Of a stretch of 64,000 nucleotides of DNA, positions 4,144-54,865 are shown one piece after another. The stretch lies in sequence record MK774614.2; one strand, written 5' to 3'. The position numbers and the translations under genes were made by a program. The first letter of the stretch is position 1, and each line of letters begins with the position of its first letter. Under the pieces are notes generated by a model. The model was given only the letters and a program-made list of their open reading frames with translations, was not told where the DNA came from and searched no databases.

Positions 4144-7100
4144 ATGACAGATCAAGTCCCTGAATTTAGCTTAGAACAACGGAAGATCGTCTTAAGCGGC
4201 AATGCCATGACGGTAACCCTTGGGATTGTCCGTCACGGTGAACCCTGGGCAAGCTCGGCGACTCTTTATGATTTAACCAGTGCCACCCATACCGAAAGTG
4301 GAACACTGACCCCAACCTCTTGGGAGTTTTTACAAGAGTGGGGGGAGATCATATTTGAGATTCCTGTTGTTATATCTAACACACAACCTCTTAACTACCG
4401 CTTCGTTGGGAGTGGTTTGGTTAATGATGACAATTGTCCATTTGAAGTTAATGTCACGGTCAACCCCATCGAGTGTAAAGCATTTAACTTAACCAGCGAT
4501 GGCGATTTAGTTTTTACCTTAAAAACCACCCGACCGGATACGGGTGCGCCTATTCAGATTGAACCGTTAGTCATGGTCTATGATTACTCGTATCCTCACG
4601 ATAATCCTAATCCACGCATTCGAGAAGCCAATCTGGAAATCGGGGAAGTGGTTGTTGAGGTCGTTCAAGCTGATGCTCCCGATGACCCGACTGATCAGTT
4701 TGTTAAAGGTCGTGCTATTTTTGATTTTCCCACCTACTCTCAACGTGTTGATTTTGAAAATGAAACAGAAGCGGTGACCACGTTTGACATGTATCCTGAA
4801 CCACTGGTGGATTACGCGGTCAAGAACATGTGGGGTAATCCTGAGGTCGATTCTCAATACCATTTGAAATTGGCTAGGATTTCTTCTTCTGTAGGGTCCA
4901 TTAACGATTTCTTTTATATGGGGAAACTGTTTAGACTTCCTTCGGAAGAAGAGTTTTATATTGTTTACTCCATGGGCGGGATTGATCCTCATTTCTGGAA
5001 CATGTTTGACAATCGCACAGGGTGGTATCCTTATAACACCTGGACAGCGTTATCAACCATTTCAAATGCCAGGGGGGTTGTGCTTGATCTTTATAATGGT
5101 CAAGGGTACATGTTCCCCAGAACCACTGCATTTGCAATGGGAACTCATGAAGGTGTTACGTTGGTTGCCATTCCAGTAACCAGTCAACTCCCTCAGCCTG
5201 TGGGTCGTTCTGTTTATTTACGCTGTTACACCACAGACATTAATTTGTCCATCATCTCTTCTGCAGATCAAGAGAAGTGGCGTTTTGGATACGAGTATGC
5301 TGAGTACAGTGTTGTCGACGATCTGATTCGGGTTAAAACCCGGTTTAATGTCTTTAGTTCCTTTAATATGGGATCGGTGATCTTTTATGTTAATGGCGTG
5401 ATTACTGACATTGATCGTTATGTTCCTACAACGGGTGATCAGCTGGAAGTTTATTACGATCCCACTATCAATAAACAGATCACTTACCAGTATAAAGACC
5501 TGAACGACTATTACTCTGAGTTGGACAGTAAACGTAAACTGTTGTTGTTTCCGGGAACACTTAATAAACCCCGTGTTTATCGCTATTTTGATGATTGTGA
5601 TTATTACATTTATAATCACAAAACGGGACAAGGGTTCTACTTTAACCGAAACAGTGAAGATGCGGTAAGACAACTGACTCATCAAGACATGGGCATTGCC
5701 TCCCAATATGTCGAGTTCTTAGTTTCCCAACTGCTGGCGTTGGATAAGACACGGTTGAGCACGGAAGATGACATTCGTATTTGTGTTTGTTATCGTGCAA
5801 CAAAATGGGTCTTTAAATTAGGACCTTGCATCAGTCGGATTAATGACCTTTACTTGCTTGAAGATCCCGAACAAATTCTGGCTGCCATGGTGGGACCTAA
5901 ATCCACGATTCCAGAGTGGTCAGCTCCTGTGCTTGAGAAGAGTGCCACAAACAACGTGTTAAACAGCATTGTTCAAAAGCTCTCTACTCAAACTGTTCGT
6001 GAAGCGCTGGGATATAATGGTTGTGCGCAAGCACTGTCCCGTTCATTGGTGTGTATGCCACATCTCCTCCCAGGAGAAACACCTCCTGAGGATGTTAGTC
6101 ATGAGCCGTACGAAACCGGGTTAGGTTATCGCATCCCTGTCAGTTACATCGAATCTTCCGTGGCGTACGAGTATGATATCGATGGACATTATCTTCGTAA
6201 AAGTCCAATTATCAACCGGGAGTGGTTTACACCAGGTGAAGAAGGTTACTACGTTGAATTTGTCATGGGTCAAGCCAGCGGCACATTAGACTATGTCATC
6301 TCGCGCGCGGATGTGCTACTTAAACCAGGCTATGGGTTTAGGGTCTATAAAGCGGGATGGTTGATTGATCCTGATGTTCCAGATCCAGAACCGGTAGGAC
6401 TTTTTGATAACGAGTATCGCATTACCGGAGATGGGGAACCACTTTATCCAGAACCCACCATTGTTCCGATTGGTCTTACTGATGTTCCTTATAACGGTTC
6501 TCTTGGGAAACCAGACGGGAAATGGGTAGACATCACTGGATCAGATCAGTATCGATTAGAAAATGGGTATTTGGTTTGGAACATGGATCTCACCAACCAA
6601 GTTGGGATGGTGGTGTTTGACTCAATTCACATTTACAATGAGTTTGAATTAACGCATATTGACAAGTCCATTTGGTTTACCATTACAGACCGTTGGGATG
6701 TGGGTGGCTTACCACTGGTGTTAGAACCAGCTCAGTTGGATGTTTGGATCAATGGTCATGCTGCTATTGAGAACGTCGACTACGTGATTGATTTTCCACG
6801 TGTCTATGTAATCAGTAAAATGTGGCTAGACAGTGCCGATGTAAACACCATTGCTTATCGTGGACGGGGGTTATCACCCAGTGGACTTATCCCAAGCAGT
6901 GAACTGGGATTTGTTCAAGAAGGTGTGTTGGGAATGAACGGACGTTATAACCTGCGTATTGATCGCCCCACTAAAACTATTGTTGCTGGTAGGGTATTTA
7001 TGACCGAGGAAGTGGATTGGTCAGAGAACATCGCTCATGGTGATAACCTAAGTGCGTTTAACGGTTTCCCGTACGAAGTGAAACACATCTATTGTGCTAA

Positions 7101-45889: not shown

Positions 45890-46921
45890 ATGGAAATTGA
45901 TGAAAGACTATTGGCGTTTAGACCAATATCAGTCATACTTAATTTTGACTGGGAAAAGACCACGTTTGATGAACGAGTGAAAATGCGTTACGACTACGTT
46001 CAAGAACAAAAGAAGAAAAATCCTGATTACGTTGGTTGGGATTTTCTAGAGTTCTTTAACTCTCTCCATGGTCCTGCTAAAACTGATGATGTTCAGTACA
46101 TGGTAGACTTTAGAAGACTGGTCAGCACTATTGGGCAAGTTGCAAGTATTTGGCAAGGTGCGGTTTATACTTCGTTCGGTGTTTCAACCAAACATGGATA
46201 TAAACATTTAGCTGCAAACATTAACGACAAATGGAAGACTATTTTACTTCATAGGGTCGTTGCTTCTACTTTTATCCCAATTCCTGATGAACTAAAGAAA
46301 TTCAGGAAGAAATTGGTTGTTAACCATAAAAACGATAATGGTTGCTGTAACTGGCAATCAAATTTGGAATGGGTAACACAAAGGGTTAACCATAAGAAAG
46401 CGATCGAAACAGGTGCTATCCCATTAACTTATTTTAAGATGACAGTTATCTACCACGGTCCGTTATATGGAAAGGAATATTTCTTCTTTTGTAAAGCGGA
46501 TCTTCTTAAACACGGATTTAACTGTGGAAATGTTTATTACGCATGTAAAACAAAAGGGAGATATCTTTGCGGGGTTTGGGAAGAGGTCCCTTTAGAAGAA
46601 GCTAAAGGTAAGCCCGTTGGCGTTCCAGAAGAAGACATGAAAGTCATACGAGATCCAAAATACGGCGGATATAAAAGAGAGCCTCGGTTAGCAACAATTG
46701 TTTCCGATGGACCTTGTAAAGGAGAACAGTTTGTTATTTACGGGTCTAAACAAATGGAGGTCAATGGATTTAGTTCTATAAAAGGAATTCCCGATGGCGG
46801 AAGTATTAATTATAAAGGTTGTAATTGGAGCAAAATAACACTTGACCAAGCAAAGGGAATACACGTTGGGTTAACAGATGCACAGAAGAAACATCTATTC
46901 CCCAATGGGATTAAACCATAA
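45890..46921 (+). CDS. Free-standing HNH homing endonuclease
   Basis: LLHRVVASTFIP...VNHKNDNGCCNWQSNLEWVTQRVNH; duplicated C-terminal module; own promoter at 45844-45868 and a terminator hairpin at ~46951-46978. Confidence 0.85.
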   Translation: MEIDERLLAFRPISVILNFDWEKTTFDERVKMRYDYVQEQKKKNPDYVGWDFLEFFNSLHGPAKTDDVQYMVDFRRLVSTIGQVASIWQGAVYTSFGVSTKHGYKHLAANINDKWKTILLHRVVASTFIPIPDELKKFRKKLVVNHKNDNGCCNWQSNLEWVTQRVNHKKAIETGAIPLTYFKMTVIYHGPLYGKEYFFFCKADLLKHGFNCGNVYYACKTKGRYLCGVWEEVPLEEAKGKPVGVPEEDMKVIRDPKYGGYKREPRLATIVSDGPCKGEQFVIYGSKQMEVNGFSSIKGIPDGGSINYKGCNWSKITLDQAKGIHVGLTDAQKKHLFPNGIKP

Positions 46922-50490: not shown

Positions 50491-51888
50491 GTGCTTACTT
50501 TAGCGGAAGTACTGAAACCTTATAGTGTAGAGAACTTGTTACCCACCAATCACTTTGATAAAATCATCAAAGAGACGGGGTTTAAAATGCCCAAGGATGA
50601 TGAGACATTCTACAAAGCCCTTTATCCTGATTTTGATGATTTTGATGCAAGACATGCCTGTGCAGTTAATACCCCACTGTACCTAAACGACTTCGACTTT
50701 AACAAAGAAGAAGATCGGGAACGAATCATTTCATTGCTGCGTACTGAGTACGAAGGGAACAGCTTTGATACGGTTGCTGCATGTGAGTGTAAAAAGTACC
50801 GCTCCAATATCTATTTGGATATGGGGGTCGTGTGCGAAGATTGTGGTCATCCGGTGACTAAACCGTTACTGGATAAAATTGAAACCAAAGTGTGGTTACG
50901 AGCGCCTGATAAAGTCAGTGGGTTTTTGAACCCGGCTGTGTGTAAAGTGTTCTTTGATCGCCTTAATACGAAATCTCCCAAAGTCAATTTGGTGGAATAC
51001 TGGATTAACCCAGACCTTCGTAAAGAGAAACGGTTTAAAGATCCTGACAATACGGCATATCGAATTGCATGTCGGTTAGAAGCATTCCGGGAAACACTGG
51101 GAATTGAGTTTGGGTATAATCAGTTCATTGACAACATTGATCTGATTATTAACTCAGCAGTAGAGCGGGACATTTCTGCTATTTTAGATCTGGACGAACA
51201 AAGTCGTGTCCACTTTGCCCAGTTCTGGCAGAAGTATAAACACCTTGCTGTATCTCAGTACCTGCCGATTCCAAACAAGATCACCACCATTGTGGAAAGT
51301 GATCAACGTGATCGCTATGTCAATAAGGAGAAGACGGACCTTGATAAGTTCTTCTTTACCATCGCCGACATGTTCCCGGCCTATGATCCACGGTCAGAAG
51401 AAAACCACGAATTGATGGGAAAGAACTTCACCAAGCTTCGTGATGTGATGTATAAAGTCATGGAAGCGGTGCTGTTCAAAAAGAAGGGGATGATCCGTTA
51501 TCATGCCGGTGCCGGTAAACTCCCAATGACAGGGCGCTCTATCATCACTGGTGAATCTGGAGTATGCCGGTCTGATACCATTATCGTTCCATGGTTATAC
51601 GGGATTACCTGTTACGATAAACATCTGTCCAACTGGCTTTATAGAGAGAAAGGATACAGTCCGCTCAAAGTAAAGGAGATTATCCGAAGCGCAGCAAATT
51701 ACAGACACCCTTTGGTAGAGGAGTTTTTCGATTGGATCGAAACCAACCAGTACGCCGTTTGTACTGCTGGCCGAAACCCCTCCATCCAATACCTCTCTGC
51801 CCGTGCTTTCTTTATAAAGTTCAACCGAGATGTAGAAGATAAATCAATACGTATTCCTATCACCTGTGTGAAGGAATTTGGTGCCGAT
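50491..51888 (+). CDS. Non-virion RNA polymerase beta-prime N-terminal subunit, exon 1 (phiKZ gp55-like)
   Basis: Zn motif CEC...CEDC; GRSII; GRNPSI; ends EFGAD, which joins FDGD in exon 2. Confidence 0.9.
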
Positions 51889-52327
51889 AAACTGCATTAA
51901 CACATGTTAATGCTTTAGTCCCGCTGGGGTGAAAGTCCTAGTGTGTACTTCTTGAATTGCTGGAAAGCCCACAAAAGTTCTCTACCTAAGCATGATTGGA
52001 AACATACATGTTCACGGTGTCGAAAGACAAAAACAACAGAGAACCTGTCCTAAGCTAAAACATAATGCTAAGGGATATTAACAAGGGGTTCCCAAGCAGC
52101 CGAGGTTCTAAATACATTCGAGATGAATGGATACGAATCAGGTTCAACGACTATCCCGTGGCTGGGAGTAGGGTCACCCGGTGATCTGAAGTATGAAGTA
52201 CCTAACCGTGTAATGACGTAGGTAATGATATAGTCTGCTCCACCCTAATAAGGATGGCGGGTGCCAGGTATCGCACCGGCGTTATTATGATAACCTTCGG
52301 GTGAACGGTAATAACGTGGACAAAAGG
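51889..52327 (+). mobile_element. ORF-less group I intron (439 nt)
   Basis: 5' exon ends in U paired to G in P1 (gat|aaa...tttagtc); P-like AATTGCTGGAAA at 51955; P7 GACTA 52149 with TAGTC 52231 inside GATATAGTC; terminal G 52327; splicing restores GAD-FDGD in frame. Confidence 0.92.
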
Positions 52328-52522
52328 TTTGATGGAGATCAGATGTACGCGATCATGTTGTACGACATTATTAGTCGTATTCATGCGTATAGTGCGTGGG
52401 GACACCAACAACAATTGGATCCCAATAAACCGTTTAAAACAAGTCGGTTTGCTACGGCAACTAAAACCAACTTGTTGAATATGAATGCGTTGTTCTTAGA
52501 CGAACCAATACAGGAGGATTAA
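52328..52522 (+). CDS. Non-virion RNAP beta-prime N-terminal subunit, exon 2
   Basis: Begins FDGDQMY, completing the catalytic DFDGD motif. Confidence 0.9.
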   Translation, partial: FDGDQMYAIMLYDIISRIHAYSAWGHQQQLDPNKPFKTSRFATATKTNLLNMNALFLDEPIQED

Positions 52523-53200: not shown

Positions 53201-53286
53201 TCAATAAAGCAGAGTTACCCAGCGTCATGGCTGGGTAACTCCTTTATCCTGCTCTCTTTTTATTTTTTATCAAAAGGAATATAACA

Positions 53287-53619
53287 ATGGAATTGAAAAC
53301 TGAGATTATTCACACCGATGACATTTGCATGATCGTTCGCTCTGGCGACATTAACACGTATCTTGTCATGGACCAATACCAAAATGAGCTAGGAACCGTT
53401 AAATTCCAAAATGGTTCCCCTGTTAATGGTGTTACTGGGATGACACTGGAGGCTATGATCGCCACGTGTATTTATCGATTGGATGCATTGAATCAAGGGC
53501 AGTTTAAATGTGATCACAATGACATTGCACTGGATGGATTGAAGTCCGCGCTTTATGCACTTAACAATCGTGCCCAAGATCGTAAAGAACGCGGTGTTTA
53601 TGACACGGAGAACGCATAA
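53287..53619 (+). CDS. Tad1-like nucleotide-signal sponge (anti-Thoeris / anti-CBASS)
   Basis: VKFQNG...G...RL...NQGQF...N.IAL..L..AL..LNNR.QDRKERGV matches the Tad1 pattern IKFQKG...HGV...RL..FQAGPF...N..AL...EEAL..MNRR..DR.ERNV as I recall it. Confidence 0.8.
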   Translation: MELKTEIIHTDDICMIVRSGDINTYLVMDQYQNELGTVKFQNGSPVNGVTGMTLEAMIATCIYRLDALNQGQFKCDHNDIALDGLKSALYALNNRAQDRKERGVYDTENA

Positions 53620-54098
53620 TGGGAATGGGGTACGCACAGCTGGTGGTGGATGTTAAATCTGCATCAGACATGGTGGTGGCTATTAAGAAGTTTTTAAAAG
53701 ATCATCCAGACGAAGAGATTTGGGATTTGATCAATATCACCAATAATGAACTTCACGCAACGTTGATGTATGACAAACGTGATCCTGACATTGATCCCGG
53801 ATTTAATTACAATACGTACAAAGCCACTGTAACGGGTTTTGAGAAGCTCGGTAATCCGAATGGTAATTACTACGCCTTAGTGTTACTGCTTGAATGTGAG
53901 GCGATTCAGGAACGTTTTAGAACGCTTTTGGATAAAGGATTTGAGCACAGCTTCCCAGAACTTAAAATCCACGTTTCCTTGAACTATGGACCCCAAACCG
54001 ATATTGCTGCCAGAGTACTGAGAAAGATGTGGGATCAAGGATTGTTTCCTAAAACGATCACCTTGTGCGCCGAGACATGGAACGAGTGTAAAAACTGA
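53619..54098 (+). CDS. Acb1-like 2H phosphodiesterase (T4 gp57B family)
   Basis: LHATLMY and IHVSLNY HxT/HxS motifs, with LVLLLECE between them as in T4 Acb1 (IHSTICY...LVLVLDSE...PHITLSY). Confidence 0.82.
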   Translation: MGMGYAQLVVDVKSASDMVVAIKKFLKDHPDEEIWDLINITNNELHATLMYDKRDPDIDPGFNYNTYKATVTGFEKLGNPNGNYYALVLLLECEAIQERFRTLLDKGFEHSFPELKIHVSLNYGPQTDIAARVLRKMWDQGLFPKTITLCAETWNECKN

Positions 54099-54103
54099 TT
54101 AAA

Positions 54104-54154
54104 TTTAATATCCATTTTATTTCAGACCTATATTACCTAAGTGATAAACAACCA
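54104..54154 (+). promoter_or_regulatory. 51-bp early promoter cassette, copy 2
   Basis: 48/51 identical to 30275-30325. Confidence 0.8.
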
Positions 54155-54190
54155 CCATGTTTAAACTACTTTTGTATTTAGGAGCACACT

Positions 54191-54382
54191 ATGTCTATCT
54201 CTACCGCTTTCTTTGGTACCATGATCCTGATCACTTTCGTATCCCTGGGTGTTCATTATTACAAAGAGTACAAAGGGCTTCGTAAAGTCATGGCTCGTCG
54301 TAATAAGGCACCGTGGTTTGCTAAGCGCACCAATGCGCAAGGTAAAACAGGATGGTCATTTCGCTTTGGTTCTAAAGCATAA
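54191..54382 (+). CDS. Small single-pass membrane protein
   Basis: N-terminal hydrophobic helix then a basic tail; AGGAG RBS; own promoter and terminator (54388-54415). Confidence 0.7.
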   Translation: MSISTAFFGTMILITFVSLGVHYYKEYKGLRKVMARRNKAPWFAKRTNAQGKTGWSFRFGSKA

Positions 54383-54457
54383 TACGATTAGCTCAACCCA
54401 ATTGGGTTGAGCTAACGTTATCCTTCATTTATTTTTTTTTTCTGTAAGGAGTGTCTC

Positions 54458-54865
54458 ATGGCAGGTATTGTGGGAACGATGGACACGCTGGGGTGGGTAA
54501 AAGAACCCACTGTTAAAATAGATCGGTTGATTGCCTATTGGTTTGCCAATCGAAAAGATCAGTCTATTATCTTTAGGAATATACAGAGCTTCCAATATGT
54601 CGTAGGGAAACACCAAGATGATAAGCAGATTGATGGGTTTTTAGAAGATGTTCAAAATAACCTGCGAAGCTTTTTACTGGAGTGTTTTGACGCAGCCGAT
54701 GTGACTGCGGCCGCACCCGGGTGGGAACCTAACTTAAAAATGTTTACGCTGGCCATTAGCGGTCAGGTTCAACAAGACGGCAATAAATATGACATTGCTC
54801 ACGCCGTCCAACTCAATGGTAAAACATTCGAAAAAATAGCAGAAGGAAGAAGACATGTCCGATAA
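54458..54865 (+). CDS. Conserved hypothetical protein of the core block
   Basis: 135 aa, AAGGAG RBS. Confidence 0.65.
   Translation: MAGIVGTMDTLGWVKEPTVKIDRLIAYWFANRKDQSIIFRNIQSFQYVVGKHQDDKQIDGFLEDVQNNLRSFLLECFDAADVTAAAPGWEPNLKMFTLAISGQVQQDGNKYDIAHAVQLNGKTFEKIAEGRRHVR

Follow-up and report, generated by a model that had tools for sequence, protein, structure and literature searches.

The stretch of DNA analysed here (the window) is the first 64 kb of the 238-kb genome of Aeromonas phage CF8 (MK774614.2, genus Chaoshanvirus), a nucleus-forming jumbo phage. Three genes downstream of chimallin, within the conserved block of chimallin, non-virion RNA polymerase and SbcD genes, lie two small overlapping plus-strand genes: CF8_0056, encoding a Tad1-family protein, and CF8_0057, encoding an Acb1-family 2H phosphodiesterase. 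We put the probability at roughly 0.72 that the two form an anti-signalling cassette of a nucleus-forming jumbo phage. An earlier note, written from the sequence alone, had proposed a Tad1-like sponge and an Acb1-like nuclease at this place and expected automated annotation to call both hypothetical; this holds for the GenBank record of CF8, but newer pipelines label the orthologues (in phage AerS_266 and in UniRef). The pair and its signals, numbered from the first letter of the window, are as follows:

53275–53278, plus strand: AGGA upstream of the first open reading frame (ORF1, CF8_0056), 8 nt before its ATG at 53287
53287–53619, plus strand: CF8_0056, 110 amino acids (aa), Tad1-family sponge protein, core domain only; deposited as "hypothetical protein"
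53607–53610, plus strand: GGAG Shine-Dalgarno (SD) sequence of the second open reading frame (ORF2, CF8_0057), within the 3′-terminal part of ORF1 and 8 nt ahead of the ORF2 ATG
53617–53621, plus strand: TAATG stop/start overlap, with the TAA of ORF1 at 53617–53619 and the ATG of ORF2 at 53619–53621
53619–54098, plus strand: CF8_0057, 159 aa, Acb1-family 2H phosphodiesterase; deposited as "hypothetical protein"
53754–53762, plus strand: HxT motif of CF8_0057, H46-A-T48
53970–53978, plus strand: HxS motif of CF8_0057, H118-V-S120

Families, folds and ligand residues

CF8_0056 is a Tad1-family protein by homology and by its modelled fold. Among Protein Data Bank (PDB) sequences, phmmer finds CmTad1 (8KBB, E = 1.7e-6), phiKZ gp184 (8Y6V chain I, E = 1e-4), and CbTad1 (E = 3e-3). 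The protein also matches phrog_2428 (E = 4e-18) and carries a precomputed Pfam label, PF24729 (Acb2/Tad1 hairpin domain), while a search against a local Pfam copy gave no match. An exhaustive search returned 1290 cluster representatives at E ≤ 1e-3, and tblastn reaches the experimentally validated Tad1 of SBSphiJ7 (E = 2e-7). Exhaustive comparison with representatives and tblastn against phage genomes were needed, as word-indexed searches yielded 3 matches for CF8_0056 and 10 for CF8_0057. The AlphaFold2 model, built from 109 sequences (pLDDT 94.3), has four N-terminal strands (residues 5–40) followed by two C-terminal helices (54–68 and 76–101). Its best 20 Foldseek matches in the PDB are all Tad1 (TM score 0.69–0.84; next match at E = 0.2), so that the structural comparison suggested by the earlier note recovers the Tad1 fold. 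The protein is without the capsid-packaging N-terminal extension, and must therefore be made after infection.

Most of the known gcADPR pocket can be traced in this small domain. In CbTad1, F82 and R109 stack the adenine, N92 reads the base, and R57, R109, and R113 bind the phosphates, while F87, H29, G55, R78, G120, and N122 contact the ribose (10.1101/2022.05.03.490397); the double substitutions F82A/N92A and R109A/R113A abolish gcADPR binding (10.1101/2023.11.15.567273). CF8_0056 keeps H9, G43, R64, F73, N78, R95, and R99 (H29, G55, R78, F87, N92, R109, and R113 of CbTad1, respectively). The Tad1-type residues that had been quoted from the sequence (within G71-Q72-F73, N78, N93-N94-R95, D98-R99, and R102) are all present, with one correction: the Phe among them, F73, corresponds to the ribose-buttressing F87 and not to the stacking F82. 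The F82 position is occupied by L68, and R57 is replaced by a non-basic residue. Leu is found at the F82 position in 19/109 Tad1-family sequences, and the equivalent residue is Phe in AerS_266 and Gln in Pseudomonas phage OBP, Klebsiella phage N1M2, and Shewanella phage SXP01.

A second ligand site of Tad1 fares differently. Tad1 sponges are homo-hexamers, built as trimers of dimers, which capture the signal without cutting it. Cyclic trinucleotides bind at the hexamer interface through R90/T97 in CbTad1 (R88/T95 in CmTad1), and mutation of these residues abolishes cA3 binding (10.1101/2023.11.15.567273). Since both equivalents in CF8_0056 are Asp (D76 and D83), the sequence indicates that the canonical trinucleotide site is very probably absent. 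Arg occurs at the R90 position in no member of the jumbo-phage clade, and among the 109 aligned family sequences (CF8 included) the site residues are Arg in 16 and Thr in 20; the site marks a sub-function of Tad1 rather than membership of the family. As judged from these residues, the CF8_0056 sponge probably covers gcADPR and perhaps some dinucleotides, and not by default the several CBASS signals credited to Tad1 in the earlier note: the canonical trinucleotide site is very probably missing and the stacking Phe is Leu.

CF8_0057 is, again by homology and modelled fold, an Acb1-family 2H phosphodiesterase. PF23474 (Acb1) is the only Pfam family that matches it at E ≤ 10 (49.4 bits against a gathering score of 27, E = 5.2e-13); phrog_755 matches at E = 4e-21, all homologues from the word-indexed search carry PF23474, and the Ludhianavirus orthologue is named "Anti-CBASS protein Acb1" in UniRef. 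Both 2H motifs that had been recognised in the sequence are in place, and H46, T48, H118, and S120 are invariant among 20 homologues, together with Y5 (E152 and W154 are near-invariant). Acb1 uses an HxT/HxT catalytic tetrad, holds nucleobases with the aromatic clamps Y12, W74, F107, and W147 plus E141, and closes with a C-terminal lid (PMC9117128). By sequence position, the candidate counterparts in CF8_0057 are Y5, F112 (six residues before H118), and E152-x-W154. The AlphaFold2 model (pLDDT 89.5) places the phosphodiesterase of Burkholderia phage BCSR5 and the FBB1 Acb1 structures at Foldseek ranks 1–5, bearing out the predicted Acb1 likeness. VIA-align gives Z scores of 13.9, 13.9, 13.2, and 12.7 for Acb1-type structures (root-mean-square deviation 2.8–3.1 Å over 136–145 residues) vs. 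at most 9.7 for the cyclic phosphodiesterase CPDase, LigT, Usb1, and other 2H enzymes.

The slot and its surroundings

The pair sits in a defined interval of the core block. Gene order runs from DNA polymerase through a minus-strand virion protein gene, chimallin, the non-virion RNA polymerase β′-like gene, and CF8_0055 to the pair, CF8_0058, CF8_0059, further genes, and an SbcD-like nuclease gene. CF8_0052 is chimallin (26% identity over 640 residues to the nuclear shell protein of EL, E = 2e-54), CF8_0055 is a homologue of phiKZ gp59 with matches in 165 phage records, and CF8_0059 encodes a gp62-like virion protein, so that the gp59-like and gp62-like core genes flank the slot. By tblastn coordinates, 26 phage records carry an adjacent same-strand Tad1/Acb1 pair spaced by no more than about 20 nt. 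The gene order of the block, with the two genes side by side in the slot, was confirmed in AerS_266, LAh10, OBP, N1M2, and SXP01, and one metagenomic contig has a Tad1/Acb1 pair as well. Order, orientation, and spacing of the pair persist in at least five genera even as identity drops to 36–40%. Ranked by distance from CF8, the phages line up in a broadly comparable way whether Tad1, Acb1, or the gp59-like neighbour is compared: Chaoshanvirus phages come first, Ludhianavirus next, and OBP, N1M2, and SXP01 last, although the ranking among these last three is not the same for the two genes. The cassette thus looks to have been passed down as a unit in Chaoshanvirus, Ludhianavirus, Petsuvirus (OBP), Nimduovirus, and Shewanella phage SXP01. 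Other members of the family have other contents in the slot:

EL: empty
phiKZ: gp60/gp61, unrelated to Tad1 and Acb1
RisingSun and Aphrodite1: other small genes, unrelated
pEt-SU: Acb1 only
AH04 and four IMG/VR relatives: one ORF of 240–255 aa, a degenerate Tad1 domain fused in frame to Acb1

The pair is therefore no novelty of CF8 but long-standing cargo, handed down within a clade of at least five genera, in a core-block slot whose contents vary. Its description as inserted into the nucleus core block is apt relative to the family-wide core, given the empty slot of EL, but not within the clade, where the locus is syntenic and without compositional anomaly (pair and flanks have equal G+C content, with no sign of recent acquisition).

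The AH04-type ORFs are the only Tad1::Acb1 fusions found. They lie at L004:8725-9450 (gene 67 of Erwinia phage AH04), at 5725-6447 in each of L008, L011, and L013, and at L009:5686-6453, and the fusion frame is conserved in these five genomes at 65–82% identity. Their Tad1 remnant of 88 aa, missed by BLASTP, was detected by profile–profile comparison (hhalign against the Tad1 alignment, probability 93.9%, E = 1.6e-7); in this remnant the FQxG loop is gone, as are the N and R ligand residues. Fusions were also sought in the long Tad1-family proteins P0037, P0091, P0093, P0056, P0073, and P0064, in which Pfam and phmmer detect no Acb1 domain. The phiKZ genes gp60/gp61 (111 and 154 aa, overlapping, same slot) were considered as divergent orthologues of the pair and dropped, with no signal by hidden Markov model search at --max or by Pfam. 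The slot genes of phiKZ (L021:6544-7330), RisingSun (gp31-33, L023:6701-7606), and Aphrodite1 (0134-0133, L024:6683-7361) have neither a Pfam match nor similarity to Tad1 or Acb1; they are candidate counter-defence genes because of what CF8 has in that place. On a further metagenomic contig (L026:3001-3798), a Tad1 homologue with 46% identity to CF8_0056 precedes a 159-aa NADAR-domain protein by 7 nt. This is another pairing of a sponge with an enzyme, here one with an ADP-ribose-processing domain.

Signals around the pair suggest a compact transcription unit, whose remaining features are:

53212–53241, plus strand: upstream hairpin, 12 bp, G+C-rich, directly after the CF8_0055 stop; terminator-like boundary
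53244–53268, plus strand: TTATCCT...TTATTTTTT motif, copy 1, between the hairpin and the ORF1 start; putative phage promoter
54191–54382, plus strand: CF8_0058, 63 aa, single-pass membrane protein with a C-terminal MA[RVTK]RN motif
54388–54415, plus strand: downstream hairpin, 12 bp, after CF8_0058; terminator-like boundary
54418–54437, plus strand: TTATCCT...TTATTTTTT motif, copy 2, about 20 nt before the CF8_0059 start

The upstream hairpin is predicted to be very stable (RNA fold, −28.1 kcal/mol, z = −5.3, 0/200 shuffles as stable), and an equivalent follows the gp59-like gene in AerS_266, LAh10, OBP, N1M2, SXP01, pEt-SU, AH04, and EL; the T-rich tract after it is conserved at the orthologous position in these eight phages. 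The same module (hairpin, TTATCCT, T-rich TTATTTTTT, about 20 nt, start codon) stands on both sides of the cassette, and the composite TTATCCT...TTATTTTTT occurs twice in the 64-kb window vs. 0.02 expected, for a pattern that was derived post hoc. These repeated modules may each be a terminator plus a phage promoter. Because two strong hairpins enclose CF8_0056–0058 and the same T-rich motif comes after both, these genes most likely form one transcript. The TAATG overlap is present as had been described, and because ORF2 begins on the ORF1 stop codon, behind a GGAG of its own, the two proteins are probably made together; from these signals we infer co-transcription and coupled translation of CF8_0056 and CF8_0057. 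Overlap and SD sequence are arranged identically in AerS_266, and LAh10, SXP01, OBP, and N1M2 have an intergenic gap of 1–11 nt with an SD-like sequence. The overlap is in itself ordinary, since the neighbours 0059/0060 and 0061/0062 overlap too; the homologies of the two proteins, by contrast, go far beyond chance. Two promoter searches came to nothing: TATATTAC, a phiKZ-type early promoter motif, has 4 matches in the window vs. 2.2 expected, none of them upstream of ORF1, and was dropped, and a sigma-70 promoter scan gave no more matches than chance.

CF8_0058 is, from its sequence and position, a tiny core gene within the hairpin-bounded unit. Small ORFs like it stand at the same position in OBP, N1M2, AH04, pEt-SU, AerS_266, and RisingSun (gp33), and because RisingSun has this homologue without a Tad1/Acb1 pair, CF8_0058 is a conserved gene of the block and not cargo of the cassette. 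In a food-metagenome run containing a phage >99% identical to CF8, contig breaks and alternative branches fall within 54120–54441, with branch points just past the Acb1 stop and around the second hairpin, and one joint skips 54143–54530. This suggests strain-level variation around CF8_0058.

Two further features of the block lie upstream. The non-virion RNA polymerase β′-like gene is interrupted, inside its catalytic ADFDGD motif, by a group I intron at 51889–52327 (plus strand; Rfam RF00028, 62 bits, E = 1e-14). Exon 1 is CF8_0053 (50491–51888, ending ...KEFGAD; matching OBP_058 residues 4–466) and exon 2 is CF8_0054 (about 52328–52522, starting FDGDQMY; residues 467–529). The two are annotated as separate genes, both "hypothetical," and AerS_266 shows the same split. 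CF8_0050 (45890–46921) is an HNH endonuclease gene between the DNA polymerase gene and the minus-strand virion protein gene; it is probably a mobile homing endonuclease, as it is missing at that place in AerS_266 and OBP.

Proposed function and its alternatives

The phage nucleus guards against DNA-targeting immunity, and not against signalling or RNA-targeting immunity (PMC13282480). Nucleus-forming jumbo phages have a shield against restriction enzymes and DNA-targeting CRISPR, but are exposed to defences that work through diffusible signals, such as CBASS, Thoeris, and the cA3 of type III CRISPR. We propose that CF8_0056 would act as a minimal Tad1 sponge sequestering the Thoeris signal gcADPR, since most of the CbTad1 pocket for 1′′-2′/1′′-3′ gcADPR and some cyclic dinucleotides is kept, and possibly also 2′-5′-linked dinucleotides that Acb1 cannot cleave. 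Acb1, which inhibits CBASS in vivo and needs no metal, cuts 3′ of adenosine in 3′3′-cGAMP, cUA, cA3, and cAAG, and leaves cGG, cA4, and 3′2′-cGAMP uncut (PMC9117128). By analogy, CF8_0057, whose HxT/HxS tetrad is intact, would cut 3′-5′-linked adenosine-containing cyclic di- and trinucleotides, its targets being CBASS signals and also cA3 from type III CRISPR. The enzyme would remove the cleavable CBASS signals and the sponge gcADPR, which 2H chemistry cannot cleave; together the two would cover the signalling-based immunity that the nucleus does not block. The earlier note had pictured a sequester-and-destroy module. Both families, both folds, and the tight linkage agree with that picture, but the idea that the two proteins act on the same molecules does not hold up as well: because the R90/T97 equivalents of CF8_0056 are both Asp, a division of labour fits better.

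Several observations weigh against this proposal. On the side of linkage, adjacency alone is no proof of joint function, because Tad1 relatives elsewhere adjoin NADAR or Rnl2, and short contigs over both genes in two wastewater RNA-seq runs are indistinguishable from DNA carry-over and without direction. It is possible, if rather doubtful, that these are two independent anti-defence genes that share a recombination-permissive slot, with no functional or translational coupling. Such independence would account for the unrelated cargo of phiKZ, RisingSun, and Aphrodite1, for the empty slot of EL and the solitary Acb1 of pEt-SU, for Tad1 genes at other loci in Noxifer and phiKZ, for the NADAR and Rnl2 partners in other phages, and for the commonness of gene overlaps in the CF8 block. 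It sits poorly with an order, orientation, and spacing (≤ about 20 nt) held over at least five genera as identity falls to 36–40%, with the in-frame fusion of Tad1 remnant and Acb1 conserved in five AH04-like genomes, and with an SD sequence inside ORF1 next to a stop/start overlap. On the side of the sponge, where CbTad1 has the adenine-stacking F82, CF8 has Leu and other members of the clade have Gln or Cys; the lid at the C-terminus is altered (G120 to D106, N122 to E108), and the hexamer-interface residues of CmTad1 (Q98, E99, M102, W103, and K106) are not conserved; because the stacking Phe and lid residues differ, affinity for gcADPR may be reduced or specificity changed. An unlikely reading, which leans on these changes, is that CF8_0056 has the Tad1 fold with a shifted ligand (cyclic dinucleotides only, or another ADPR-derived signal) or is a decaying sponge, in place of a gcADPR sponge. 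Besides L68 and the altered lid, it has T50 in place of a near-invariant Asn; the AH04-like lineage shows that a Tad1 gene can decay at this locus, and Tad1, Tad2, and Acb2 homologues shift specificity, with about a quarter of tested sponges inhibiting none of seven systems (PMC12393519). N78, R95, R99, F73, R64, and G43, invariant or nearly so in the family, are nevertheless kept, Leu at the F82 position is a tolerated variant (19/109), and the sister phage AerS_266 has Phe there.

The points against the enzyme concern its chemistry. Its second catalytic motif is HxS and not HxT, the 2H fold also serves RNA repair enzymes and 2′,3′-cyclic phosphodiesterases, and several GenBank records label CF8_0057 orthologues "RNA ligase," as does PHROG 755. 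A housekeeping role (2′,3′-cyclic phosphodiesterase or LigT-like RNA repair) in place of an anti-CBASS nuclease would fit these labels and the structural matches to LigT, CPDase, and Usb1 at Z 8–10. Ser for Thr in the second motif is usual within the 2H superfamily. We consider such a role quite improbable: the sole Pfam match at E ≤ 10 is Acb1, above the gathering score, Acb1 structures align at Z 12.7–13.9 vs. ≤ 9.7 for other 2H enzymes, and the conserved neighbour is a Tad1 sponge. The protein is also compact (about 155 aa), with an N-terminal Tyr and a C-terminal Glu-x-Trp that resemble the Acb1 clamps and lid (PMC9117128), and UniRef names the Ludhianavirus orthologue as Acb1.

The anti-signalling cassette can be extended into a more speculative history, which we offer tentatively. 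In a large clade of nucleus-forming phages, the Tad1-Acb1 pair might be an ancient co-inherited operon whose proteins specialised against each other, the sponge shedding its trinucleotide site because the nuclease next to it destroys such signals and keeping no more than the gcADPR pocket, while in AH04 (Meadowvirus-like) the sponge domain lost its ligand residues and was fused to Acb1 for another role. Separate genes, fused genes, and the nuclease alone form a natural series for studying how sponge and nuclease share work. More broadly, a fixed cassette in phages of Aeromonas, Pseudomonas (OBP), Klebsiella (N1M2), Serratia, and Shewanella points to host defences that matter, and the gp59-like/gp62-like interval is a defined hotspot to mine for counter-defence genes, beginning with the cargo of phiKZ, RisingSun, and Aphrodite1. 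For Aeromonas phage therapy, the cassette is of help in predicting host range among CBASS- or Thoeris-bearing strains.

Relation to known systems

Much of what is found here has precedent. A Tad1 protein in a nucleus-forming phage (phiKZ gp184), the wide distribution of Acb1, and the labels on the AerS_266 proteins are already known, and the identities of the two genes are unsurprising because current pipelines already label their orthologues. What is modestly new is that the slot is fixed, that the trinucleotide site has been lost, and that fused and nuclease-only variants exist. A full-text literature search found no description of a conserved Tad1-Acb1 cassette in Chimalliviridae, and a 2026 review gives phiKZ Tad1 (gp184) as the only anti-defence protein described in jumbo phages (PMC13282480). 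If the more speculative history given above is true, no counter-defence unit that joins an enzyme to a sponge would have been described in Chimalliviridae before this pair, which would add a second anti-defence function to the one known in jumbo phages.

CF8_0056 resembles the solved and validated Tad1 proteins (SBSphiJ7 Tad1; CbTad1, 7UAV/7UAW/8KBE-H; CmTad1, 8KBB-D) in its four N-terminal β-strands and two C-terminal helices (TM 0.82–0.83), in the FQxG...G...R...F.C..N...R...R..R signature, and in being a small phage protein. It differs in being shorter (110 aa vs. 123–142 aa) and in its low identity (21–25% to solved Tad1 in Foldseek alignments, 33% to SBSphiJ7 Tad1), and, relative to CbTad1, has Asp at both R90 and T97 and Leu at F82; the hexamer-interface residues of CmTad1 are not conserved in it. 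phiKZ gp184 (8Y6V chain I) is likewise a Tad1 domain in a Chimalliviridae phage, with the trinucleotide Arg/Thr replaced by Glu/Asn, but it is a 230-aa protein at another genomic locus, whereas CF8_0056 is the bare domain. gp184 is packaged in the capsid and injected (10.1101/2025.11.23.690004), and phage tblastn and a profile search gave no Acb1 match in phiKZ.

CF8_0057 shares the compact 2H fold, the two His-x-Thr/Ser motifs, and PF23474 with T4 gp57B, FBB1 Acb1 (7T26/7T27), and the BCSR5 phosphodiesterase (9Q2G/9Q2Y). Its identity to the solved Acb1-type structures is 14–18%, and it differs from them in its HxS motif and in an inserted helical segment at about residues 12–45 that includes the lowest-confidence stretch of the model. 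The closest counterpart of the whole unit is the AerS_266 pair (WNV45880.1/WNV45879.1), in the same slot with a 1-nt overlap and 74% and 66% identity, respectively; these proteins are labelled "Anti-Thoeris, immune evasion protein" and "Anti-CBASS, nuclease," automatically and not from experiment, and the sponge differs in having Phe at the F82 equivalent. Finally, the anti-defence islands of T-even phages, in which acb1 stands beside ipI, acb2, and other genes, similarly cluster counter-defence against signalling immunity (PMC9117128; 10.64898/2026.05.06.722914). CF8 differs from these in that sponge and nuclease form a fixed two-gene unit, set in the core block for replication and transcription of a nucleus-forming phage, which is otherwise conserved.

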